Notes: generated by a model not told the origin, from the letters alone. A stretch of 64,000 nt of DNA from Blastocystis sp. Blastoise (GCA_039096225.1 JBBPEB010000025.1:1-64000); one strand, 5' to 3'. Positions 3,902-34,335 are shown, counted from the stretch's first letter. Numbers and translations are program-made.

Positions 3902-5390
3902 TTATGCTCTTCCCCATACTTCATAATCTTCTACTGTAAACTTATTAGTAGAATTAGAGTTATTTGTATTTACAAATAATGAATGTTTTTGAGGAGTATT
4001 CACTTGAGAATAAGAAGATGCTTTACAAGAAGAATTAGTATTACTATGACATTGATCAGATATATAGATATCACAACCACATCCAAATATGGGACCATAA
4101 GAAGAATAACAATATATAGCTTTACTTCTATCACTATTTATATAATCATATTTAGTAGGAGGAATACCATGTTCATTAGTTAATGTAAAGAGAAATTCTT
4201 TAGAATAATTTTTCCAATCTATATAAATCATATTGAATAATTATATAAAATAAATATATATACCTGAACCAGCCCAACTTTGATCTGTATATCCTCCAAA
4301 TATATTAATATGATTATTATGACTTATATGTTTAATGATAGTTACTGTTTCTCCTTTATTATCACAATATCTATGGAATTCGTCTTTTGAATAATTATGT
4401 TCACTTGCTCTATATATATATATATATATAATATAATATAATAAAGTATAAATACCTAAATAATAATTTCCATTTCTTTTCTTTACCAAGCCAATTCATT
4501 AAGGGTATTTCCATGGATTTATTAGTAAGTATACGTGTATAGGGGAAATATGAATAAGGGATTATACATTCATCCACTATATTTATTACTTTATCACCAA
4601 ATAATCTACACATTTCATTCTCTAATAATTCTTTATTAATATTCTTTGTTTCTTCTTCAGATACATAAATACAATTATATTGAATATATTCATAAATATA
4701 ATCAATATATGTATAATCCATCTTCATAAACATTTCATTATTCTTTTCGTCATAATCTACATATCCATCATCATATTCATTAACAATCTTAGTCCATAAT
4801 CCATTCTTCTTCCAATAATCTCTTAATATATCATCTTTCTTATCATTTATATAAAGAATAACATCATCACTTTCTTTATATTGTTTCATTTTATGATCTC
4901 TTCTATAATAAGTTTTCATTAATTCTTCAGGCATAGGTAGATTACAATATTCAAATAAATCTAATAATTCAATTTGATCTCCAAATTTCAATTTATCAAT
5001 ATTTATTTTCTTATTCATTAAAGAATCAATTAATAAAGGAAAAAGTGTTTCATCACCACGATAATCAAAAAAAATAGTACCATCAACAGTTCTTTGATTT
5101 TCTTGGGAATATTCATATAAATAAGTCCCAACTAAACTATTTGTTATTCTTTTAGGAAGAGAATAAACTGGACCATTATTAGTGAATCGAATATAATCAA
5201 TTCCATTATCATTATTATACATATTTAAATCATTTTCATTCAGAAAAGAAGATTCTTGGATAATTATATGTGGATCATCACCATTCTTATCCTTCATTCC
5301 TTCACAATTTCTTGTTAATCGATTCACTAATTCATTTATAGACTCACCTGAATGAATACAGAAACTTATTGACTTACTTAAAATACCAAT
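3902..5390 (-). pseudogene. 3' part of a TLDc-domain protein gene (BTB-like N-terminal region), cut off from its start by the outer CACTA insertion
   Basis: Exons 5390-4456, 4409-4264 and 4218-3902 joined by GT-AG introns 4455-4410 and 4263-4219. They give TLDc motifs WKLLFRASEH..FHRYCDNKGETVTII..IFGGYT..FLFTL..GPIFG.G.DIYI..F.VEDYEVW. The reading frame continues upstream only at 34243-34335. Confidence 0.85.
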
Positions 5391-5479
5391 CACTAGTAGG
5401 CATATTTACGGTTTTTCTGGCACTACTACATCGAATTGGCAATATTTCCGCAATTGTTAAAATTGCAACTGTAAAAATG

Positions 5480-6044: not shown

Positions 6045-6755
6045 CAACAATGTATTAAACCAGACAACAACTTTTCATCCTATATATATTTTAGTTAATA
6101 AATTAAATATATATATATACAGCACAAATACTTGGCAGCAAATCAAAGAACCAAGTATAAAAGTGGTCTATAAATATTTAACAATTAGATATAATACATA
6201 ATAATATATATATAAATATATCTCTGTATGTATATATATTGTATATGTAGAGTATCAATTTATTAAAAGTATTAAACATACTAAAATTCATAATTTATAT
6301 AATTTTCTTGAAGCTTAGCCAGTAAGGACAGTTTTTCGCTGCAACCCTTACACAAATCATCAAGAATACGATATGCTGTATAAGTAGCAGACTATAGAAA
6401 TAGAATAAAATAAGTATAATATAAATATATATACAAATAATGAATTTGTTTCTATATTATTTTGAGCACCTTCATCATTAGGAAAAGATATTGGTGATAT
6501 TCTAAAGAATTTTAGAATCGAGCTTTTGTATTTTTTGTTTCTGAAACAGTTAGCAACCACTATTTGAACTTGAAAAGGATCATTAAAATACTCAGCATCT
6601 TCATCATGTAAAGTATTCCATATAATTGACGATATTTTTATAAATAAATCGCTATTCAAGTTTAAATTATACGCATCCTTTTTCTTTTCCCACATATATA
6701 TAGAATTCGTCCGTTCTTCGTCAGATAAAACCATAGGAATTAAATTAACTGCATC
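6045..6755 (-). CDS. 3' exons of accessory gene B of the outer element (5' exons at 20937-21260)
   Basis: The acceptor at 6756 is followed by DAVNLIPMVLSDEERTNSIYMW..., which aligns by eye with accessory gene A NCLKYIPYVINEGDLIDAKNMF. Intron 6434-6392, then SATYTAYRILDDL. The 3' end is approximate. Confidence 0.75.
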
Positions 6756-6829
6756 CTATATATAAAATAATACTTAACACTGGTAGGCACTTTTGAGTTT
6801 TTGAAGGTTTTTGATTGGCTAATTTTCGT

Positions 6830-7650
6830 TCAAGACTCATTCAGCCAATAAAATTTGAATAAAAAAAAGACTTAGGCAAAAAAATGAAAATTTTGTGAAA
6901 ATTTTCAAGTCGACTTTTGATTTAGACTCAAAGACCCTATTTGACATATTTTAACAAAGAATTGACATTATTTTTTATATATAGAGGGTCACACAATATC
7001 CAAAACGTTTTTCTTTTGTTTTAAGTCGTAATTCCGACAAATAATGGGGTCAATATTTTAAAACCTCTTGTTGCTCTGTTTAAAGTTTAAACCCTCTGAA
7101 AGTCACAAGTATGTGTAAAAGTGAATAAAAAGACCTCTATGGGTCAAAACCAAAATTCAGCCAAAAAGTCAAAAATTTATATTTTTTTTACACTGAAAAA
7201 ATGAACCGAGCCTATTTGTTCCATGGGTAATCAGACCAGAGTTTTCAATTTTTAAAATATTTACGGGAATAATTTTCTCGTTCAAAACTGAGTCTATTTA
7301 TATTTTATTGAATATCAGAGGACATAAGAGTTCTATAAAAGGTTTTTCATTAAATTTTATTATGACTCAAAGTTCCGCATACAAAAAGTATGTCAAAGCT
7401 TATAAATAAAGGGTTCTTTTTCAGAATCAACTAAAAGTCTTTTTTTAAGTCATTTTTAGAGTTAATTCTTCAACGGATGGACATTTTAAGTTATAATTAA
7501 TAGTTTTTGGACGAGTTAGTCAACAGATCAGAGAGTCAACAAAAATGAGTTATTTTTTAAAGGTTAAAAGTGTGGGATGCAGTAGTATTGTATAGATGGT
7601 GTAGTGTGAAACGTGTCATAACTTATAAATATGATAGTGAGTCATAAAAA
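6830..7650. promoter_or_regulatory. TGAC/GTCA/GACTC-rich subterminal region of the inner element (candidate transposase or accessory-protein binding sites)
   Basis: Dense short motifs (gactca, gagtca, aagtca, gggtca, gtcac) in both orientations. A similar block lies at the equivalent end of the outer element. Confidence 0.55.
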
Positions 7651-8282
7651 ATTAAAAAAATTAAAGAAAGGTATTTTCATGAAAAATTTTGTATTTCACT
7701 TGAACATTTGAATTTATTAGTGAATTTATAATTATTTTTATTTTATTGTCTCTAAGAGGAATTAGAGCTTCTCACAGTGTTTATGTATGTTTAGAAGACA
7801 AGAATGTATTGTGTCAGTATTTATTTATTAAATATTTTATATTTATTTTCATAATTCTTTTAGGTTTTCCATTCTGGAGTCCCTCTTCGTATCAGACTGT
7901 CTCCTTGGTCAACCTCAAAAATTTAATCAACAGAGTTGCTGCTACTTTTGTTTAACAAGATTATTTCCTTGTTCTTATTCCAACGCTTTCAAGAAACAAC
8001 TTGCCATGCTATAAAAAGTATATAAATGTATTATTTGTTTTTCTATTCATTACTTTTTTTTTCAATTACTAAATATAAATATGTTTTTAATATTGGCTTA
8101 TTTTAAATTGTATACAATTTATATTAATTATAATTTATATTATATAGAATGATAGGTTTTGTTGTCTATTCATACATCAAATTGTTAGTTAAGTCCTGTT
8201 AAAGATTAAACGGTATATAGATAGAAATTATTATTAATATTATTATTATTATTATATATTATATTATTATTATTATTATTTG

Positions 8283-8318
<36 letters not shown>

Positions 8319-8411
8319 TGATTATTTATTACGGGTATTCTTTAAACAATTAATAAATTACCCTATAATTATTAATAATTTTTTTATTTTCTAAAAATAT
8401 TTTATATATAG

Positions 8412-10147
8412 ATCTAAAAGAGATAGTTCTAGACTAAATAATCTACATATAAATTCTAATAAAATAAATAAAATTGATATAAATGGATCAGCTATAAATA
8501 ATATGAATAAAGATAAAAATAATAAAGAAACAGATGAATCGAATCTCTCTCTTAAAGATAATTCTATTTCTATAAATAATAATAATATACATTCAAATAA
8601 ACATCGTAAAGAATCAAATGTTTCTAATTCTTCATCTTCTTCATCTTTATTTTCATCTCAAGATAAAAATACAAATAATTCAAAAGATATATCAAATAAT
8701 AAGAATAACTCTGCTGTTAAAGGTAATAGTATTCATGATTCTTCTAAAAATATTATAAATTATATAAATTAGATGAATAATAGAAATCATAGTATTGATT
8801 ATTCAAATATAAATAATATACAAGAAGAGGAAAAAGAAAGAAAAGAAGAAAGTATACCAGAACAAAAAGAACAAAAAGAAGAAAAAATAGAAAAACATAA
8901 AGAAAAAGAGACAAAAGAAGAAAGAAAAGAGGAAGATGATGATGAAGAAGAAGAAGAAATAAAAGAAAGAGAAGAAGAAGAAGAAAAAGAAGATAATGAT
9001 AATGATGATGATACTACAAGTATAATAACAGATACCGATAGAGTATCAAATCCTATTATTCGTGGCCGTGGTCGTGGACGTGGTAAATTACGATCTCATG
9101 GAAGAGGAAGAGGTAGAGGAAGAGGAAGAGGAAGAGGTTCATTCTATCATTATGATGATAGTGATAATCAAAGTGAAAATGAAAATGATGAAACATTTGA
9201 AATTGATAATGATAAAAATGATAAAAAAGAAAATTATCATTCTATTTCACGTCATAATTATGATTCTACTTATAATATAGATGGAAATGATTTAGATAAA
9301 TATAAACGTAAAGGTATGAATATGAAATTAAAAAAAAATAAACGTCGTAATAATGATGATGATAGTTCTGATGATTATGTGAAACATAGAAGGAATAGTA
9401 TTTCTAAAGAATCTTTAAAGAGAAAATCAAGTATTAAAAGTGATTATTCTTCTATAAGTAAATCAAAAGAAGATAGTATAAAGAGTTCTACTATAAATAA
9501 TTCTATAAAAAATAATTCTATTCATATTAATAAACCATTATCTTCAATAGATGGTAAAACATTATTAGATCTAGAAGGATCTACTCATAAAAATTCACGG
9601 TTATTTGAAGAATATCATTCTATGGATTTATCAAATGAAACTAATAATAATAATACTAATGGTAATTATAAGAATAATAATAATAATAATTCAAATAATA
9701 ATAATCAAAACTCACCAACAGATACAGTATCAACAAATTCCCGTGGAAATAATTCATCAAATAATCATGCTAATGATAAATCTACTACTACTAATAATAA
9801 TAATACTAATGCTTCTAAAGATATTCCTAATGATAAATTTATTGATAAATCAGGTATATTAAATGATACAAAGAATGATCATGAATCTGAAATGGATATA
9901 GAAAAAGAAGAACGAAAACAATTACCTTATATTAATCCACCTCCAAGAACATGTATATTAAATAATATATAAAAAAGAATGCTCATTATATCAAAGAATA
10001 TAAATATAAAATACAAAATGAAAAAGAATTATAAATCAAATCATAATCATGAAGAAGAAACAAATATAAATGTAGATATGAATAATATTAGAGATATAAC
10101 GATCCAAATTCAAGATAATTCAGTAAAGAATTCAATGAGAATTTAAA
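8412..10147 (+). pseudogene. Cargo: low-complexity N/E/D/K-rich protein gene fragment with RG repeats, interrupted by stops
   Basis: ORFs 8503-8772 and 8773-9972 are in the same frame, separated by one TAG. The frame stays open past TAA 9972 to about 10147. Contains an RGRGRG tract and acidic runs. Acceptor-like atatag near 8411. Confidence 0.6.
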
Positions 10148-10499
10148 ATACTCTATATCGTTTTTTTAATTTTTGTCTTCATCTCATTCTATATATCATG
10201 TTATTAAGAAACATATTTATTATCAAAACACAACTATTGGATGTTCAAATCTATATTGATAAATTTATTCAATAGAAGTCCTTTCTTTAAGTTCATACTA
10301 ATGAAATTTGATCAACACGATTTGAAATTCATTAATATAAATATATCCATGATGACGCATTACTTTTTTGTTTATGAACATGAAAAGGGAAATGTGATGA
10401 ATATAATTATTCGATCATTAATTACTTTGATAATATACATACAAATATTTCGATATCTATATAAAAACTTTCATTCATCTGCTCTTATAAATAATTCGT

Positions 10500-13400
10500 G
10501 AACAATGTGTTTTCTTCAATATACAATATAATTCCTTCTTATTATTCTACTTCTAATACTACTAACATTAATATTATTATTATTATTATATACTATTATT
10601 ATACTATTCTTTTATTATTCTTTTAATGTTATTCTTTCTACTATGAGTTCTTATAAAGCTAAGCATATTTAAATTATGGTTACTTTTCTATAATGATAAT
10701 AATGGTTCCTTTAATATTACTACTAATACTTTTATTGTTTGTGTTATATACTGACACTATTATTATACCTTCTTCGTTATACTAGTAATTATATTCTTAT
10801 AAAATTTCAATCTATCCTGTTATTATTTTTTTATACTATCCAAAAAATACTTTTATAATTCGTATATTATTACTATATTGTTATATATAAATTTGTTGTA
10901 TTATTATTCCTATAATATTACTGATAATAATTATTTCTGCTTCTACTATTTTTATCTCTTACTATGTTATTAGTTGGGTTATAACTATTTCTGCTTGTAT
11001 TTCATTAATTATATCACTATTACAATTATTGCAAAGCTATTATTCTTACTGGCTCATTATTTGTCTATTATTCTTCTAAAATAAAAATTATTACTATTCA
11101 TATGATTCATTTATATGATACTATTACTTCTATTATACTCCTATCTACTATGACTACTGTTTCTACTTTTAGTAATTTTATTTTCATGCTATTATCGTTG
11201 TTTATGTAACTATTGGTAGTACTATTACATACTACAAATATTTAACACTATTACTACCATTCCTATATTTTAATAGCACTTATTATTACTATTATTACAA
11301 TAAGTATATAAAATATTATGGTTAAAATGTATAGAAAAAGCAAAAAGCAAAATATTTTCTGGATAGAATATTATTAGTAATAACAATATAATTAATACAA
11401 TGTTTAATTTTTTATAATATTTAAAATATCAAATAGTATACGTGAAATATTTGATCGAAATAAGATTATAAACTATATTAGATATTAGTATAGTGATATA
11501 ATTAATGGCAGATTAATAATATAAGATAATATATTAGAATATGAAGTATAAAGTAATTATTGCAATCATTATTTAATATAATATTATTTCCATTGAAGAG
11601 TTATTATAAAATAAGATATGCAAAGATAACGAGTTTTATAAAACACGAATATAATACTATCATAGTTTATTATATCTTATTGAAGGAGAGCAAATATTAT
11701 TTAATATAATTAATAATGAAAGCATACTAATCTAATTTAAAATTCCAGATTATTTAATGGTTTCTCTTCATTTTTTAATGAAATAATTATGCAGATTCTT
11801 ATTATTATTAGCATTATAAATCTTGCTATTACATGTTATATAATAATTTTTAATATAAATTTTTCTAGAACTTAAACTTAATATATCAGAAAATATAAAA
11901 AGAAATATCATGGGACATATATATAAATAATATATGATACGATTTTAATCGTTATGAAGCATACACTAAGTTCCAATTATGTATTGTTCATTATAAGCAA
12001 TTCATATAATACATGATATTTTATTTGTACTACTACATTTGTTTTTATATTGTTATATAAAATATTATTTTAATAATACTACATATTATGTAGCTTTACA
12101 ATATTAAACTCTTAATATTTATGTTATATTTTATGCCTTTAGTTATGTTTGATATTCAAAGTATTTTACTGGTCTTAATAAGTATTTAACATATTTAAAT
12201 GCATATTTATATTTTATGTATAATGGGTTATTATTATATCATTATATGGATTCCTATAAAGTAATTAATACTTTATTAGATATACAAATGAGACTATTCT
12301 CTATATTTTTTTGAACAATATGTTATCTTCATATTACCTTTCTCATTTTGTATTAACCACTTTATTGATCTTTTAACAATTATTAGTGTTATCTCAAACT
12401 ATCTATTAGTAATTAGTTGTTACTAATACTTATTTCTAATTTGAGCACTCAACTATTCCTATTGAATATCTGCTATAATGCAATTATTGATGATGTCTGC
12501 ATTATTGAAGATCATTCATTTTGTTTGTAAACTATTATTAGTATAGAAATTCATTAATAGTATAAAATAAATATTTAATATTTCAAATGATATAATGAAT
12601 TGAATAAAGATTTCTATTATATGTATACTATGTCCATACATACTATGAATAATGATACTTATATTTCAGTATATTTAATATTCAAGAATTATCTATAACA
12701 ATTATCAATTCTCTATTAATCTTATCCTTCAATTGATAATGTTTTATATTCGTATTATTCCTATAAACTATTATTCTTATGGTACTACTAATTATAGTGT
12801 TATGATTTATATATTTTTTTGTATCATTATATATATGCTGTGTCATTTTTATTATGAATCGATGATTAATTTAGAACCATTTATACTTATTTATTATATC
12901 TAATATTGTATTTACTTCTATATCTGCATTTTTTTTTATTCCTATTATTTTATTTTACCGTTATATACTAATGTTATTCATACTATAACTATGTTCCATC
13001 AAATTTAATAGGAATTATCATAGTCACGTCAACTTAATGTCCTACTTATTACTACCACTTCTATGTCAATACTTATAACTAGAACTAATTCTATATAATA
13101 ATCAATACTATATTTAAAATGCATATAATTGAACAACTACTTCGTAATAATGTGAATATAGTTATTTATATGGACAATAATAACTCCCTTGATCCTAAAT
13201 GTATTGTATTTAAAGTAATAATTTTGCATCAAATTGATATTAAATCTATCTATCTATCTATCTATTTGTTCATAAAATTTTTAGTTATAATAATAACTAT
13301 CTTAATAATGATAATAGAATAACGTTAATCCTTATAGAAAACTATTAACGAAATCGAATAAATTATTCTTCTAACTATACTTCCTACATCGACATATTTC

Positions 13401-14050
13401 TACAAGCTAGTCTTCATCTTATGTATAGCTATTTTTTTTTATAAATTATGAATTATGCTCTAAACAGTAGATGAGGTAAAGATCTAATAGTAATATTCAT
13501 TTAATTTATTATCAAATAATGTTATTTGAAGAATTTGCATACTATTCATAATAGAATACATTTCTCCTAAATTATTCATTCTAACAAAACTCCTGATGAT
13601 TATATATAATCACTTTTGTAAGACCTTAAAAATATATTAACTGATATGATTATTTTTTTTTAAATATTATTTAAATATAGATAAATAAATGTAATAAACA
13701 TTACCCATTTAAATTGTTATTTCACATAATGAAAGAAATTTATATTGCGTTTATTCTTCTAAATAATCTTCTCTTTCTGTCATATTTTATTACTATATTT
13801 TAAATCATTACGTCCTATTATATTTAATTGGCATGTATTTATTGCTACAACTCTTGTATTACTACAATATAACTTGATTCTTTATACATTATTCCAACAA
13901 TAATACTTTATTTCTTCATTTTAAATGTATACCTAGCATTAATGAGAATAGTTCAAATATATTATCTCATTTTATCTGATTGTTTTATGTAGTAATAGTT
14001 CATTATTAAATTTAATATTGATTAATACAAAGAATATTGATATTATTTGA
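10500..14050 (+). pseudogene. Cargo: heavily decayed S/T/I-rich coding-like sequence, possibly from the giant surface-protein family
   Basis: Residual TCT/ACT/ATT codon periodicity on + with many stops and no long ORF. Composition resembles the sense strand of the 36.6-60.4 kb gene. Not aligned computationally. Confidence 0.35.
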
Positions 14051-14325
14051 AATACAAAATGAAATTATTACATAACTTTAGTTAAAATACGTTAAATATA
14101 TTATAAGAATATAAAAGAAATGGATATTAGATACATATTACAAGAATGTAAAAGATAAAATCATGTATAACATAAAAATATATATATATATATATATGAA
14201 ATTTAAATGATTTATAATATGAAAACATAAAAGAAAATGATATTATATATAATATAATAAAATTATTAGTATTTATAATATAAAAAAGTAAAGGTTATTG
14301 TTATTCATATATTGGCTATCGCAAT

Positions 14326-17300
14326 TATATTGAAATTTTATTACGAGTCATAAATACAGTATTTGTGATAACTGTATTAGAAGTCACAACCCTTTTATTA
14401 TTTCCTTCTTCTCCTTCCTTTTCCTATATACATAAATAATTGTTATATTAAAGAGAATATATATATACATACATTTTCTGGAACATATGAGTCATCAACT
14501 TTTGTTTGCCTATATTCATGAATATCTGCAATAATCAAATTATCTGGTTCAATATTACATATAGATATAAATTTTGGAAAATCTCGTTTTCTTTTTGATA
14601 AAATTTCATTTGAATCATTAATAATATAGAATAATCCTGTATTAGATATTCGTACTTCTGGATATTCATATTGTTTTATTATTACCAACGATCCTATTTG
14701 AATGTAGCAAAGTGATTTAATTAAATGTACCTTTCTTTCTCTTCCTTGATCATGTGTGAAATACATTATGTATGAGTTATCAGTGGTTTCAATCCCTTCA
14801 TCTATATCTGAACAAGTAAATATAACTGAATCGTTTATTAATACTTCTGAATAAAATGTCATAGTTATTCTTCTTAAATTATTAATTATAATATTACATA
14901 TGTTAGAATCAGTTAGAATATCATAAGGAACAATATCATTTTTATTTACATTATGGAACAGTATTTCTTTGAGTGACTCATCATTTGATGCTAGAATTAT
15001 GTTTATTATTTCTTTCATGTCATTATCAGATAAGTCAATTCTTTCTGATCCTCGAATTCCTTTAACGGTACTAATTTTGTTTCTATTAACTATAATGGTA
15101 TTGTAACTTTCACATACTAATTCCTTATTTGATATATCATCGTTAATAATAGATTCCTCTTCATTATATAGTTCTTTATTAATCTCTAGTTGCGTTTCAT
15201 CAGTTATATCATCACTTATATTAGTTGTTGTATTCATATCTGCTACTTCTCTTTCTATAATACGTCTAATAGACGACTCATTAAAATTCTTTCTTCCAAA
15301 AGAAATTCTTTTAAGAAAAGAATAAAACCTTTCTGATTGATAGGTAGATCCAGAGAAGATAGAACCAGAGTTTATTATTGAATAGTAAAGATGTTGTACA
15401 AGATGAATTTGAGTATTTAGAAGCTCCTTTGGTATCAAAAGCTCACACAAAAAGCAAAATATATTACATTGATCTCTAAACACTTCCAATAAATGCTTTG
15501 ATGTATTACCATGATATAGGTATACTTGACGTATTATTGTAGCTAAAGGGTCAATAAGTACAACAAGTGGTGAATCACTGGAATTAAAATCTAAAGTTAT
15601 TAATGGAAGAATACAAGAAGTGAAGAAAATCCTTGTGTGAGAGGACATGTTCCAAAATTTTTTTTCATTTAGAATATACCTAAACTCATATTCATTATCA
15701 TTATATAGTGTATTAATGGCTAAAATCCTGGAGTTAAGAATTGATATATTTTCATCTTTTAAACAAAATGTACTAAGAATTGATTCAGGGTTTAATGCCT
15801 TATTTTTAGATATCTTAGAAGTATAATCGGCTACATTGTAATGAAATAATAAATTTAAAATTAGAGTACAAATATTATTGAATAGATGCATGGGATCTAG
15901 TAAATAACTAGTAGATGCATCAAAGTATGCCAATGATTCGAAGATACCAGGATTATGTTTAATACCTAAGAAAGATCCATTTTCAGATGAATTGCATCTA
16001 TTCATATTTATTGTTTCTTGTGTTCTCTGTGAATATTCCTTTTCTTCAAAAGCATCATAGTATATACATTCATTAGGAAATTTGTCAATAATAGTATTAG
16101 TAGTAACAGGTAAATCATCTATAAGAGGAGTAGTTGGAGATATATTAGAATCATTTATGGCTACAAAAACAGAAGGATATAGAATTTCATTTATCTTTTT
16201 CTTATCTTCTGTTAAATGAATATATTTCTTTATACTCTTATAAGCACATTTTATACCTTCGTGAAAGCCTTCGTTCTTTCTATTCCAAGAAATCTCACAA
16301 TATCTACATGGGAATGTTGAAGAGGGTCCAGTAAAGCTTCCAACGCTTGTAATAGCCATACAATCCCCATAAACATTTAGTAGAACTGCTACAACTCGCC
16401 TTTTTTCAATTCGTTCATTAATAAATACATCCATTTCAATTCCAGATGATAGAAGAATTAACTCTTTCATAAGTAATGCAAGAACAGTATTAGATAGCGA
16501 TTCTTTTGTTATACAATATGTCCAGAATACTCTCTGATCATGTAATCTAGTATTATTATAATTTAATAATTTAAGAAGAATAGGAAAAGATGATTGATTA
16601 GTATCAGAGATAGGATTTGAAAAGACACAAATTCCATCACAAGTTAAATCAAAAAATAAGAAAATATCACCATTATTAATAACTTTATTCATATATTTGC
16701 GATAATTTTGTCCTAACATATATTCTGGAATTGTACTTGGCAAATGTTCTATTGGTATAGATAAATAGTATTGAATTTCCTCCTTCTTGTAATAACTAAT
16801 ATCTTGTATTAATGGTTTAGAAGACATCAAGTAACGTATACGTGGGATTAAAGGTATAACAGACACTTTTATGCCTTTATATAAATAAAATATTAATCAG
16901 AATAATGAAAGTTAATTTATATTCACATATAAATAGTGTATCATATACTATAAGAATATATATAAAACGTTATATATAATAAATAATATCTTGTATTGTC
17001 ATATATTATATGAAGAAAAGAAAATAAATATAATAGAAAGAATAATAATAAAAAGAATAATAGTAGTATAAATAGAAATGAATTATATATATATATATAT
17101 ACTTTTGCTTTCACTACATTCCTCGTTTTTACATTGAGTCTTTTCTTTATTAAGTAGATTTCTTCCTCCATTAAATGATACTAGTTCTTTACAATTATCA
17201 CATATGTAGATATTTTTATGTAGTGGAGTTTCAGAATGGCAAGAACAGTATTTCCGTATTATGTCCTGTCCATTCTTGGGAACAAAAAGTAATTCATGTT

Positions 17301-17748
17301 CAGGAACCAAAAGTTTTATGACATCATTTATTAGTTCGTATAGTTTCTTAATCTTCTCCGTACTTATTTTAAGCTGACACCAACAATCATAAACGAAATC
17401 TTCAATTCTTGAATTATCATTTATATTATTTTTTGATGATGGCTTCTAAATAGTTTAAAGAGAGTTATATGAAATAAAAAATATATAAAATAAAATATTA
17501 TAATGTTTTTAAAATACCGAATTTATAATTTTTTCCAAAAACAAATCAGATATTTGTTTAGTAGTGTTTGAGTTCACGTCTTCATCTGAATCTAATTCTT
17601 CCATCAAGTGAGAAGTTTCGATGATTATATTCTCTTCATGAAGAGAGACATGATCAGTTGAAATTGCTAAATATATAAATAAAATTAAAAGTCTCTTACA
17701 TCTACGTTTTGATGGAAACCCAGGAAGATCATATTGACGTCCTGTCAT
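14326..17748 (-). CDS. CACTA/CMC-type DDE transposase of the inner element (multi-exon)
   Basis: ATG 17748. Introns 17699-17667, 17517-17446 and 17102-16875. N-terminal Cys cluster (CDNC..CKNEEC). Core motifs LTCDG, YGDCMA, FPCRYC, LDPMHLFNN, QIHLVQHL..G.I..ST.QSER are typical of CMC transposases. The last exon below 14470 is uncertain. Confidence 0.88.
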
Positions 17749-18972
17749 TGTAATGTTGAATATAATTTTTTAATTTTTTCTGATTATTTCCTTTTTTTTC
17801 ATGGATAGAAATACTTTTATAACAATTATTCCCAATAATTTTGGTTTCTTAATGAAGTTCATGGTTATGTGTTAACAATTTTTGGAATTACATAAACTTA
17901 ATGTCGGCATGATTTTTATGATTGTAGATTATTTGAATGAAAAATTGATGCTTAATCTTTATTTAGGTAGTTAAACACAAAATAATGTTACAAATGCAAA
18001 TATTAGAGAATATTGGATTTATATTAGAATTAATTTATTGCTGATATTTCAAAATAGCCAAATTTTTCAATATGGAATAAGTTGAATTAAGTTTTTACTT
18101 TCATGGATAAATGATTAGAGAACATATTTACTTTCTATCTTGTTTTTTTCTTCTAATTATTTTCATAAATAAGCGTTTCAATATTAAATATTTCTTTATG
18201 AATAATTTGTTTACATAGAAATGATAATAATATATTTATATCTATATTAACAATTACAAGAATTCTTACTATATGATTCAAACTGTAAATTTAAGCAATA
18301 TGATATATTCTTATATGAATTCTCAAGATGTATATGGTTTAGTAGTATATACTATTATATACTAGAATATATTTTAATTATATTCTATAATATTTTTCAT
18401 ATTTTGTGTTAATAAATCTTTGAATATTTTTTATTTTATATATAGTTTAGATAGTATCTTACAACAATCATTTAATTAAATGAAATAATAAGAAAGTAAT
18501 TGAAAATACACAAAGAATTATATATATATATATATATATAATTCCTTTTATTATAGTAATTCTTCCTCTCATTTTTATTTCTAATTTAGATTGATTATTT
18601 ATATAATTTATTTTAACTTATATAGTTTTCAAATGAAAATAATATTATAAATGATAGTTTGTATACTATTAATATTATCATCTTCTTAATTGAATATCTC
18701 ATTTAAATACTAAGAAACATATTAACGTTGTTCTTATCTATATCCTGTATATTAAGTATATTATTAATAATACAAAATTGTATAATTTTCTTTTTGTTTG
18801 ATAAACCAATTTTTGCAACAAGATCATCAATTATAAGATTTACAGAAATAAATATATTACATAAATATAAATAAAATATATTTTAATAAAATTATTATAT
18901 TTGTTTTAAGACAAACAACAGAAAAATAAATAAAAAAAGATATATTTTTTTATCTTTAGCTTATCGTTAACC

Positions 18973-19930
18973 ATGCAACAAAAGTAACATAAAACTATTT
19001 TATATAATGTTTATACTGGGAATTATAGAAATACTGCAAAAAAAAATGATATTGAAAGAGTAAAGAAATTTAAATTGAAACTGTTTGGAGCTTTTCATGA
19101 GTTTTATCGTTCGATACTATATCCTGAAATGTTAAGTATATTAATTATTAATTATATTACATTTTTAGAAACAAAAAAATGTCATTATTTGACATATGAC
19201 ATGGAAACATTCTTTCGGAAAGAAGCTCTCAAAAGAAATATAAATGTGTCAGCTAATAAAGCTTCGACAAAACAAATAAAGGTATATTATACTCTTATAT
19301 ATTAGACTTCAATACTATAATTTCTATTAAAAATTTATAGAATTGCTTAAAATACATACCCTATGTTATTAATGAAGGAGACTTAATAGATGCAAAGAAT
19401 ATGTTTATTGAAAATAATGGTAAAACACTTCTTGATGATGAAAATAAATTATTGGATATTATTTTAAAAATAGTAAAGGATTATATGTGTCAATATAAAA
19501 ATGTCGAATCACTAAGTGATTACGATATTATTAGATGTGTGAAAAAATCTCTTTATGATAAAAAGACTCATGGAGACTTTGCGTCTTCCTTTGGGTTTTT
19601 ATTACTAGATAAAGATGGATATAAAGTAGAAGATAAAAAAAAAATAAGAAGTGATTTTTTGGTATGTATTATATATTCTATATTAACACAAAAATTTAGA
19701 TGAATTATCATATATAGGTTTTGCAATGGAAAAGGAATCCAGATTTTTTTGATAAAACTACGTATGCGTATAAAACAAATTACGTAGTCATCGAAAGATT
19801 GCAGAATAGTTATGACAAACTTATGGAACACAGTCTTCGTCATTCACAAGTATATCCTATTGGCTATTTATTTTATTATTGTTTCTTTATTTTATAAAAA
19901 TCTAAAATAAGTTGACGCAGTTGAATCTCA
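18973..19930 (+). CDS. Accessory gene A of the inner element, unknown function, divergent from the transposase
   Basis: ATG 18973 and several short GT-AG introns give MQQKNTAKKNDIERVKKFKLKLFGAFHEFY..DMETFFRKEALK..STKQIK|NCLKYIPYVINE..VLQWKRNPDFF... Homologous by eye to gene B. The 3' end is approximate. Confidence 0.72.
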
Positions 19931-20936
19931 TATATATTTAAGATATAAATTGTTTTATATTTTATTATTATTATTCTATTAGGTTTTGTATATTATACTA
20001 TACTATAAAATATTTTCTTTATTTATAATTATCTTTATATAGTAATGAAATATACATTAGTTATGACGTCATGAATTCTTAGATCCTTAAAAACTTATTC
20101 ATTTATTATAATAATATATTTAAAATGTATGTATTATATATATATATATACTAATTTTCATTATTTTTATATAGATTTATTACAATTTGTAAATATAAAG
20201 CATTCTGAGTATATATCTTTTCATTTATTTTATTAATTCTTTTTATATAGATTCTTTTTGATTGTATAATTGCCCGTTACATTCAGTTTAATCTATTCTA
20301 TGTATATATATATATATATATTAAATATTTCTATACATTATTTATTTCATATAATTTATAGATCAGTTTTTCTTCCACAATAATATGAGCAGTGCCTTTA
20401 ATTGTATAAATATATTTATTATTGTATGATATACTATTACTATTTCTATTCATTCTTATTTTTATTTATATAGTTGATTAATATTTCTTTTATATGTTAA
20501 CTAAATATGAGTTATGTAATGCTCTTTAACAAAAAGTTGTTGTTATTATAAATTTTAGTTATAAATCATTGTTTTGTTTGTTTTTACTAATGTTTATATT
20601 GATGTATATTAAAACTAAAAAAAAAACTATTTTTTTAATTAATAACTCTTTTAAAGAATATTCTATAGAATTCTGGAAATATTATATATTATCGTTAGCA
20701 ATAATTTTCCAGAAAAATCGTGATAATACTATTGGACTATTTTCATTATTTTATTGGTTAAATATCATTAATAAACTAATCATATTTTATGAAAGAACAT
20801 AGAAATTCTATACATCTGAAACAGTCTTAAAAATATTTAGCAACAATTTCTAGTTTGTCTTATTTTTAGTCCCATGAAAAATGCCTACCAGTGTAATATG
20901 TAATGATTTTAAGCTAAATAGGTAAATAATACATAC

Positions 20937-21260
20937 ATATATTTTCTTTTTTGAAGATGTATAAGATCCAGAATATCCAAGGTGTTTTACACAGAGTTTT
21001 CTCAAAAAGACTTCAACTTCCATGTCACAGGAATAATTATACGGTCCTAAAACAATTACAAAATAATAAAAACTTACAATACCACCATTAATCAAGTCTT
21101 CGAACCCTTTGAAAAAGGATTTGACTTGTTTAACTGTTCTTCGTTTTAGTCGATGAAGTGATTTCAATTTTTTCTTACCATGTGTTTTATTTTTATCATA
21201 AGTAACAGCAGAAATGGTTTCATCTGTTGATGAAATATCGCTAACCACTGATGAATTCAT
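20937..21260 (-). CDS. 5' exons of accessory gene B of the outer element
   Basis: ..KQVKSFFKGFEDL..EVEVFLRKLCVK..SSKKKIY| with a GTATGT donor at 20936. Matches gene A KKFKLKLFGAFHEF..METFFRKEALK..STKQIK| with the same intron position. Confidence 0.75.
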
Positions 21261-22414
21261 TTTTTTCGTCTGCTGATATAATAAAAAATAATTAACTGGT
21301 TAAAGAAAAACAACTAAAACACAACAGAATTATATTTTTGCGTAATATCCTATATAACCGTGATTTTTTGGAAATAATGGCCATAAATAAACAGATTCTT
21401 TTATTATTGGATCTTTCATACTATTTTCATAATAATCGTTTTCCACGTTCGAATATATATATGCAAATAAACACTATTTTTTCAAAAATATAACATAATG
21501 CAGGCTATTGTAGTAATATCCTTTGTCATTTTTACTTATGTTAAAGAAACAATTATTGACTCTTAATACCATTTTCTTTACTTCATAAAACATGACAACC
21601 GTAAAGCATTTTAAAGCGCATAAAAAACCATCAGTGATTAGTACATATCTATCTATTTTTTGACCAGATTGCATATCAATTATAATTATATACTGTTTCA
21701 ATATTTTTAGAATCAATTCAAAGAAATGTATCCATAAGCAACCATAATCAAATAAACATTTTAATTAACACATTTAATGAAAGTATGTATAATAAAGTAT
21801 TATCAAAAATATCTAAACAATTAAATTTATTAATAAGCTTATTTCATTAAATTCTCAATTGATTATTTCATTTTATATAATATATAACTAACTAATTATC
21901 AGCTATCTATTGGTTTAACATCTTATAGCCAATATATATTGTATACTAGTTAAACTTTTATTATATTTCATTACATGAATCTTCATATGTTGTCTATAGC
22001 CCAGGATATTCGCAAAAATAGCGTTATACTTCGCCAAATTATTGAAATAGCAGTATAAATAATAAGCTTTTATATTTCCATATCATATATTATTCATTTT
22101 AACCATTATATACATATATCGTATTTATATAATAAGGTATTATATAGTAAATACTCTAGCAATTGCTTTTTTGTAATATTATAATTTAGAATATATTACT
22201 ATTACATAATAAATATCTAACTTTATATAAATATCCATAATTAAATTATTATTATATATTTCAGAGCAAATAAAAATGAATTGTAATCAATATATTTATT
22301 TAGATTAGTTTCTAATATAAATAATAATTATATTTATATATTATTGCTTTTTATTTATAAACTGTGCTATTTTTACTTCTTATATGCATTATTTAAATAT
22401 TACTATATATATAG

Positions 22415-25408: not shown

Positions 25409-25521
25409 ATTTTTTTAATTATGTTTCAATGTTTATTATAACTTTCTAATTTATATAATAGTCTATTCCTGTTATATTAAAAAATTGTATTTCTTTATCT
25501 ACATTCTTTGTTTTGTTATAA

Positions 25522-26290
25522 AATAAGTAGATGTTATAAGGTATAAGTAGATTTTATAAGGTATAAGTAGATATTATAAGGTATAAGTAGATATTATAAG
25601 GTATAAGTAGATATTATAAGGTATAAGTAGATATTATAAGGTATAAGTAGATATTATAAGGTATAAGGTATAAGTAGGTATAAGTAGGTATAAGTAGGTA
25701 TAAGTAGGTATAAGTAGGTATAATAAGATATAAGTAGGTATTATTAGGTATAAGTAGGTATAAGGTATAAGTAGGTATAAGTAGGTATAAGGTATAAGTA
25801 GGTATTATTAGGTATAAGGTATAAGTAGATATTATTAGGTATAAGGTATAAGTAGATATTATTAGGTATAAGGTATAAGTAGGTATAAGTAGGTATAAGT
25901 AGGTATAAGTAGGTATAAGTAAGTATAAGGTATAAATAGGTATAAGTAAGTATAAGGTATAAGTAGGTATAAGTAAGTATAAGGTATAAATAGGTATAAG
26001 AAGGTATAAGGTATAAGTAGGTATAAGTAAGTATAAGGTATAAATAGGTATAAGAAGGTATAAGGTATAAATAGGTATTAGAAGGTATAAGAAGTTATAA
26101 GGTATAAGAAGTTATAAGGTATAATAAGTTATAAGGTATAAGAAGTTATAGGGTATAATGTATTATACGTTATAAGAAGGTATAAGAAGGTATAAGAAGG
26201 TATAATAAGGTATAAGGTACTAGAAGATATTTTGTATAATGTATAAGGTATAATGTATAAGGCATTATAAAGTATAAGATATAAGAAAAT
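25522..26290. repeat. Compound minisatellite: 20-bp ATAAGGTATAAGTAGATATT units grading into 10-bp GGTATAAGTA and 7-bp GGTATAA variants
   Basis: Directly visible and almost devoid of C on the + strand. Lies just downstream of the outer transposase stop. Confidence 0.93.
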
Positions 26291-34242: not shown

Positions 34243-34335
34243 AATCAAATCACCAATCAGTCTTTCAAAATGAATTACATCCTTCTGAACATCACCAATC
34301 TTATTACCATCAAATTCTACCTTCTCTTTCACCAT
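34243..34335 (-). pseudogene. 5' end (31 codons) of the disrupted TLDc gene
   Basis: ATG 34335: MVKEKVEFDGNKIGDVQKDVIHFERLIGDLI joins in frame through the TSD to GILSKSISFCIHSGES at 5387. Confidence 0.85.

Follow-up and report, generated by a model that had tools for sequence, protein, structure and literature searches.

The 14.1-kb CACTG element at 6778-20893 lies within an intron of the accessory gene of a second, larger CACTA element, which itself interrupts a host gene. The assembled copies show directly both insertions and their order, as well as the intron and the empty sites, and the locus is very probably an ordinary nested insertion between two young CACTA families. The window, meaning the whole 64,000-nucleotide stretch of DNA analyzed here, was compared with the contigs of Blastocystis sp. 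Blastoise (33.3 Mb in 34 contigs), among which the nested locus lies on contig C18. The assembly of the Russian-tortoise strain Rus-B is described as 33.3 Mb in 33 scaffolds, with 23% GC and Nanopore reads (PMC12129017); the main text of the genome paper gives transposon content just as total fractions, and our literature search found no report of CACTA/EnSpm elements in Blastocystis. Transcript evidence comes from contigs of one public run (X1), the only run containing part of the stretch and probably an RNA run. The features of the locus, with gene B denoting the accessory gene of the outer element and gene A that of the inner, are as follows.

5391-34242: outer CACTA element, TIR CACTAGTAGGCA, TSD AAT; 14,733 bp long when the inner element and one TSD are left out
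6281-6755, minus strand: gene B 3' half, exons 6755-6435 (107 codons) and 6391-6281
6756-20936, minus strand: gene B intron 2, lengthened from the 62 nt of un-nested copies to 14,181 nt
6775-6777, plus strand: left copy of the inner TSD, TAA, present once in empty sites
6778-20893, inverted relative to the outer element: inner CACTG element, 14,116 bp, with TIR and TSD; sister copies on C6, C14, C23, C1 and C10
6778-6794, plus strand: inner left TIR, CACTGGTAGGCA at 6778-6789; perfect over 12 bp and with one mismatch over 17 bp
7800-14300, plus strand: inner-element cargo, without family assignment
14328-17748, minus strand: inner CMC/CACTA transposase gene, ~1,000 aa, open
18973-19897, plus strand: gene A, inner accessory gene, 243-aa model; introns of 45, 33, 59 and 56 nt; terminal exons uncertain
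20877-20893, minus strand: inner right TIR, reverse complement of CACTGGTAGGCA at 20882-20893
20894-20896, plus strand: right copy of the inner TSD, TAA
20937-21260, minus strand: gene B 5' half, exons 21260-21083 and 21046-20937; the sister copies have the NCBI models P0006 and P0013
21975-25405, plus strand: outer CMC/CACTA transposase gene, placed head-to-head with gene B; open, modeled by NCBI at 984 aa

A scan of the whole window for CACT[AG] pairs, filtered for a 3-bp TSD and for a GC-containing TIR that matches perfectly over 12 bp, left two pairs, 6778-20893 and 5391-34242. For the inner TIR 12-mer alone, the chance expectation in the window is ~2e-4. The original prediction had placed a CACTG element of 14.1 kb at 6778-20893, flanked by duplicated TAA, and the TIR pair, the TSD and the matching empty sites bear this out. 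It had also expected un-nested outer copies to be contiguous between 20894 and 6774, as those on C5 and C8 are: at C5:681745-681747, and near C8 position 2030023, the equivalent of 6777 runs directly into that of 20897. Both empty sites reproduce the in silico excision letter for letter around the junction, and this sequence comparison confirms the nested insertion of the inner element into the outer as real.

When the inner element is taken out together with one TSD, the original GT-AG intron of 62 nt and 16% GC reappears (donor 20936; the acceptor AG ends at 6756), which joins ...KKKIY to DAVNLIP... in phase 0. Exactly this intron had been foreseen; it is present in the C5 and C8 copies of gene B, whose NCBI models use the same junction, and the other introns modeled in genes A and B measure 33-59 nt. 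On the nested contig, NCBI models only the 3' half of gene B (P0012, 106 aa from an internal Met). We do not accept the additional intron that NCBI places within exon 3 of gene B, because the homolog P0018 retains that segment, and the TGTTTGTT 3' motif was scanned for and set aside, since none was found in tortoise isolates (PMC12129017). Gene B intron 1 (21047-21082) is 36 nt long, in frame and stop-free; it is optional and is retained in the C8 contig. Its counterpart in gene A, the 33-nt intron, is likewise in frame.

Contigs of run X1, mapped onto the C5 copy of the outer element, include one (depth 2) that lacks exactly the 62 nt, with GT-AG ends, and in which both variant letters are C8-specific alleles (window 21053 and 21073). 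Because the skip is exact and the contig carries C8 alleles, the gene B intron is real and is spliced in an un-nested copy; such precise loss of an intron contained in all three genomic copies also fits X1 being RNA. The junction 20937-6755, proposed as a check on the nested gene, was thus recovered in spliced form from the un-nested C8 copy, not from the nested allele, and no transcript across the intron assignable to the nested allele was seen among the run X1 contigs.

The outer family has three genomic copies at 98-99% identity: the window copy, C5:680361-712541 and C8:2015452-2031433. Within the window, the outer element splits a host gene with a TLDc domain (3902-5393 and 34243-34320, minus strand) in its first coding exon, at ~codon 31; the frame of the gene is regained upon removal of the element. 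The window copy carries 5 private substitutions in ~2.9 kb and none in the gene B coding sequence, and so few private substitutions point to a very young nesting. Among the positions that tell the three copies apart are 21471, private to the window copy, 21053, 21073 and 21267, where C8 differs, and 6519 and 6624, where C5 does. DNA comparison of the inner with the outer element gave no match at E<1e-4. A G-rich, strand-biased minisatellite (25520-26290) lies directly behind the outer transposase, and the C5 outer copy has several kb extra at about this position. Upstream of gene B lie two short open frames (21331-21716, minus strand), which are confined to the three outer copies. Farther along the window, 37660-60444 on the minus strand holds one 7,594-aa open frame; the giant, repetitive protein that it encodes is surface-like, and the frame contains an exact internal 2-kb duplication near 39.4-43.4 kb.

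Each transposase has a 99% match among the NCBI proteins of Blastocystis sp. Blastoise, and the two share ~29% identity with each other. Their invariant residues (P0001 numbering) are D240, D329 and E673, C348/C351, and D484-M486-H487, forming a DDE triad, a CxxC motif and a D-x-MH motif. DUF4218 is matched in 7 of 7 transposase members and Tnp21 in 1, all below the Pfam cut-off and in the expected order, and a transposase profile reaches PF02992 proteins with the motifs aligned (E 4e-3 in 5.8 billion sequences). Both elements have the CACTA/CACTG ... TAGTG/CAGTG termini and short TIRs by which CACTA elements are recognized (PMC10741241), together with a 3-bp TSD, TAA for the inner element and AAT for the outer. 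Subterminal repeats consist of a 24-bp array at the outer left end and weakly repeated 7-mers elsewhere. On the strength of the transposase motifs, the weak Tnp21/DUF4218 matches and the PF02992 profile match, taken with the termini and the 3-bp TSD, we file both elements as new members of the known CACTA/CMC superfamily; the termini and the Tnp2 matches favor the CACTA clade over Mirage or Chapaev. Both families would be young, judging from their dispersed copies, which are 98-99% identical.

The sister copies of the inner element on C6, C14, C23, C1 and C10 are dispersed, have different flanks and diverge by 0.7-2.4% in the compared stretches; the C23 copy was placed by its coordinates. The C14 copy is scattered over 91 kb in at least 5 pieces, and the C6 copy has its transposase interrupted by 2.7 kb. 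The cargo includes a low-complexity acidic/RG-rich frame interrupted by stops (8412-10147); against the host genes of the window it gave low-complexity matches only. The copies at C1:398842 and C10:28627 (L009:3868 onward and L010:1-1500) are cut at a (TA)n tract, window equivalent 18519-18545, by a Helitron-like element with a GC-rich hairpin end followed by CTAG; L009 and L010 are 99.96% identical, flanks included. The C6 copy stops with its contig in the same (TA)n tract and has an AAG flank in common with C1 and C10, which suggests that C6 may join C1 or C10 via the Helitron-like element. Four further elements (C2:77035-93168, C17:856638-872548, C8:2194228-2215457 and C15:1019301-1052225) share their left 2.9-3.4 kb with the inner element at 94-95%, and their accessory genes are just 48% identical to gene A; on these identities they are mosaics with swapped ends or cargo. 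A TIR-bounded family of 7-9.5 kb, with the TIR twice at one end, 217 bp apart, occurs on C5, C8, C13, C16, C21, C23, C29 and C31.

Homology between the two accessory genes, part of the original prediction, stands at the level of profile and gene structure and falls short in pairwise alignment. BLASTP of the 107-aa exons of A against B returned nothing significant (E=9.2), and local alignment of the joined models, built from window coordinates, was marginal (shuffle p 0.04), whereas a profile of B with two relatives places A first of 5,002 sequences, 5,000 of them shuffles, at E 0.005. Three introns lie in matching phases, each gene has a 321-nt exon, and the gene A junction QIK|NCL (intron 19282-19340) aligns in register with KIY|DAV of gene B, the shared junction that had been claimed. 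Exons of A and B also match intermediate copies at the same positions, e.g., C28:439277 and the C3:1152575 family, and an accessory gene stands head-to-head with the transposase at 40 of the 44 transposase loci. Profile rank, register and phases, intermediate copies and position together support A and B as distant homologs. That the invader carries its own homolog is therefore true but trivial, this anatomy being the common one.

Database searches for the accessory family, run with single exons or the NCBI protein, found no credible match outside this Blastocystis, and the protein has no Pfam and no ESM Atlas match; its AlphaFold model is unusable (pLDDT 37). An ENA match, P0020 (E 4e-5), was rejected as compositional, being a repetitive protein without Blastocystis annotation. 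By its position, the accessory gene, of which the genome has roughly 50 copies, would be the equivalent of ORF2/TnpA (PMC4158355; PMC2613891). Gene A sister copies at C23:438344, C10:29449 and C14:1031766 are broken at or near an A-run (window 19630-19636); those on C10 and C14 have a 2-bp deletion at the run that may be a homopolymer assembly error, and the window copy is open. One accessory homolog, P0019 (NCBI WA158_004260), is annotated as fused to ABC-transporter sequence, probably through insertion of an element in a host gene or as a prediction artefact.

Nesting is common in this genome and is an ordinary arrangement. At least 4 clear CACTA-in-CACTA cases stand beside 37 exact TIR pairs, which span ~1.5% of the genome. 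The C5 outer copy holds another CACTA element at a different site, 143 bp from its right end and with a 3-bp overlap, and has a further insert of several kb; by coordinates, C15:1019301-1052225 contains two CACTA modules, and at C15:775039-782944 a TIR pair spanning 7.9 kb lies between a transposase and an accessory gene. In an informal comparison, nesting appears somewhat commoner than the ~1.5% predicts, which could hide some targeting. We give little credence to anything more unusual at this locus, be it a lineage with an orphan divergent accessory gene whose elements insert preferentially into one another, or a 14.2-kb element spliced whole from a gene with ~50-nt introns.

The first of these ideas, in the form that the elements target each other, for example through shared accessory proteins at their ends, and that the newcomer profits from knocking out the accessory gene of the element it enters, having one of its own to offer, is very unlikely. 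It draws on the several CACTA-in-CACTA nests in a compact genome, on the location of the window and C5 nests within 1.4 kb of an element end, on unpaired ends on C21 and C23 that hint at further nests, and on a C29 accessory exon likewise split, by ~4 kb. Insertion sites nevertheless vary among cases, an element of another superfamily (a Helitron-like end) also nests in these elements, and selection against host-gene insertions predicts the same enrichment. Complementation is doubtful in view of the weak A/B alignment, and intact copies of B exist elsewhere. The implication that the invader replaced its host's accessory gene is not supported: nearly all transposase loci carry such a gene, the C5 and C8 copies of B are intact, and the other nests occupy unrelated positions.

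Given an ordinary nested insertion, inactivation of the nested gene B allele is likely. To reach the 3' half, a transcript would now have to traverse 14 kb, with gene A in antisense and the inner transposase gene in sense orientation. A TAG in the inner right TIR could serve as a cryptic acceptor at 20885, 52 nt of intron from donor 20936, whose use is predicted to yield a 111-aa truncated product. It is the first of at least 10 YAG sites in the 310 nt that follow the donor, and every acceptor in this stretch leads to a predicted product of 99-133 aa, versus 239 aa. Inactivation is made plausible by the 14.2-kb intron with its same-strand transposase gene, by the TIR acceptor and by the NCBI model of the 3' half alone. 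Both halves of gene B are without coding lesion, as expected of a young event, and the family would still have the protein if the nested allele were lost, since gene B is intact on C5 and C8 and spliced in the latter.

The lesion-free halves, together with the intact donor and acceptor, could also be taken to mean that the 14.2-kb intron is still spliced, with the invader hidden inside it and gene B functional. An unspliced X1 contig from upstream of gene B (21443-21636) has two differences from C5, the number expected of the window copy, so the promoter region may be active. This reading is nonetheless very improbable: neighboring modeled introns span 33-62 nt, the intron holds a whole same-strand transposase gene and numerous YAG sites close to the donor, the sole spliced contig derives from C8, the NCBI annotation on this contig covers the 3' half alone, and youth by itself would explain the absence of lesions. 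Least credible of all is an assembly artefact fusing two repeats, which the inner and outer elements both are, because both junctions fall exactly at TIR ends, the duplicated 3 bp occur just once in each of the two empty sites, the inner element carries variants that the compared sister copies lack, and the assembly, if that of strain Rus-B, used Nanopore long reads (PMC12129017).

Under the ordinary nested insertion that we favor, two diverged CACTA (CMC/EnSpm-like) families, apparently young in this Blastocystis genome, would share one unit: TIR, an ORF2-like accessory gene head-to-head with a DDE transposase, cargo, TIR. An outer-family copy first entered the first coding exon of the TLDc-domain gene, generating the AAT duplication; an inner-family copy then, very recently, entered an AT-rich TAA within the 62-nt gene B intron 2, duplicating the TAA. 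The site was probably not specifically chosen, and the nest may have persisted because the host pays little for an insertion into another transposon. The gene B allele here is probably silent or truncated, through the TIR cryptic acceptor and termination inside the inner element, and its loss would matter little if the intact C5 and C8 copies act in trans.

The locus offers a clean, datable case of large autonomous-type CACTA elements recently mobile in a tortoise Blastocystis, and its three alleles, nested on C18 and un-nested on C5 and C8, form a natural test of the intron length that this spliceosome can manage. Nesting itself leaves the general picture unaltered; of greater interest are the orphan accessory family, with its head-to-head arrangement, and the question of allele-specific splicing.

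In their short CACTA/CACTG TIRs, 3-bp TSD and length above 10 kb, the elements resemble CACTA/EnSpm elements such as maize En/Spm and soybean Tgmt* (PMC2613891), with which they also share a DDE transposase of Tnp2-like type, carried host-like sequence and a second gene, poorly conserved and possibly equivalent to theirs. Cryptococcus CNIRT6 (10.1101/2025.05.19.654958) has CACTG ends, as does the inner element. The Blastocystis transposase differs in lying far from every library member, below Pfam cut-offs; the second gene has no detectable relative outside this Blastocystis, and the subterminal repeats are weak or one-sided. Whereas TnpA and TnpD of En/Spm are alternatively spliced products, the second gene here is separate and divergently transcribed. 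Defective Spm insertions are spliced from transcripts, and element termini can supply splice sites. The inner TIR, with a YAG 52 nt from the donor, is similar in this respect, but use of that acceptor here would truncate the protein, and there is no sign of the element being spliced out. Nested insertions are known from plants (reviewed in PMC10741241), with 30,199 reconstructed nests on wheat 3B (PMC4290129). As in the nests of maize and wheat, a younger element splits an older one, with a TSD at the junction and an empty site in sister copies; the described nests, however, mostly involve LTR elements in large plant genomes, whereas here two large DNA transposons of the same superfamily are nested in a 33-Mb protist genome.
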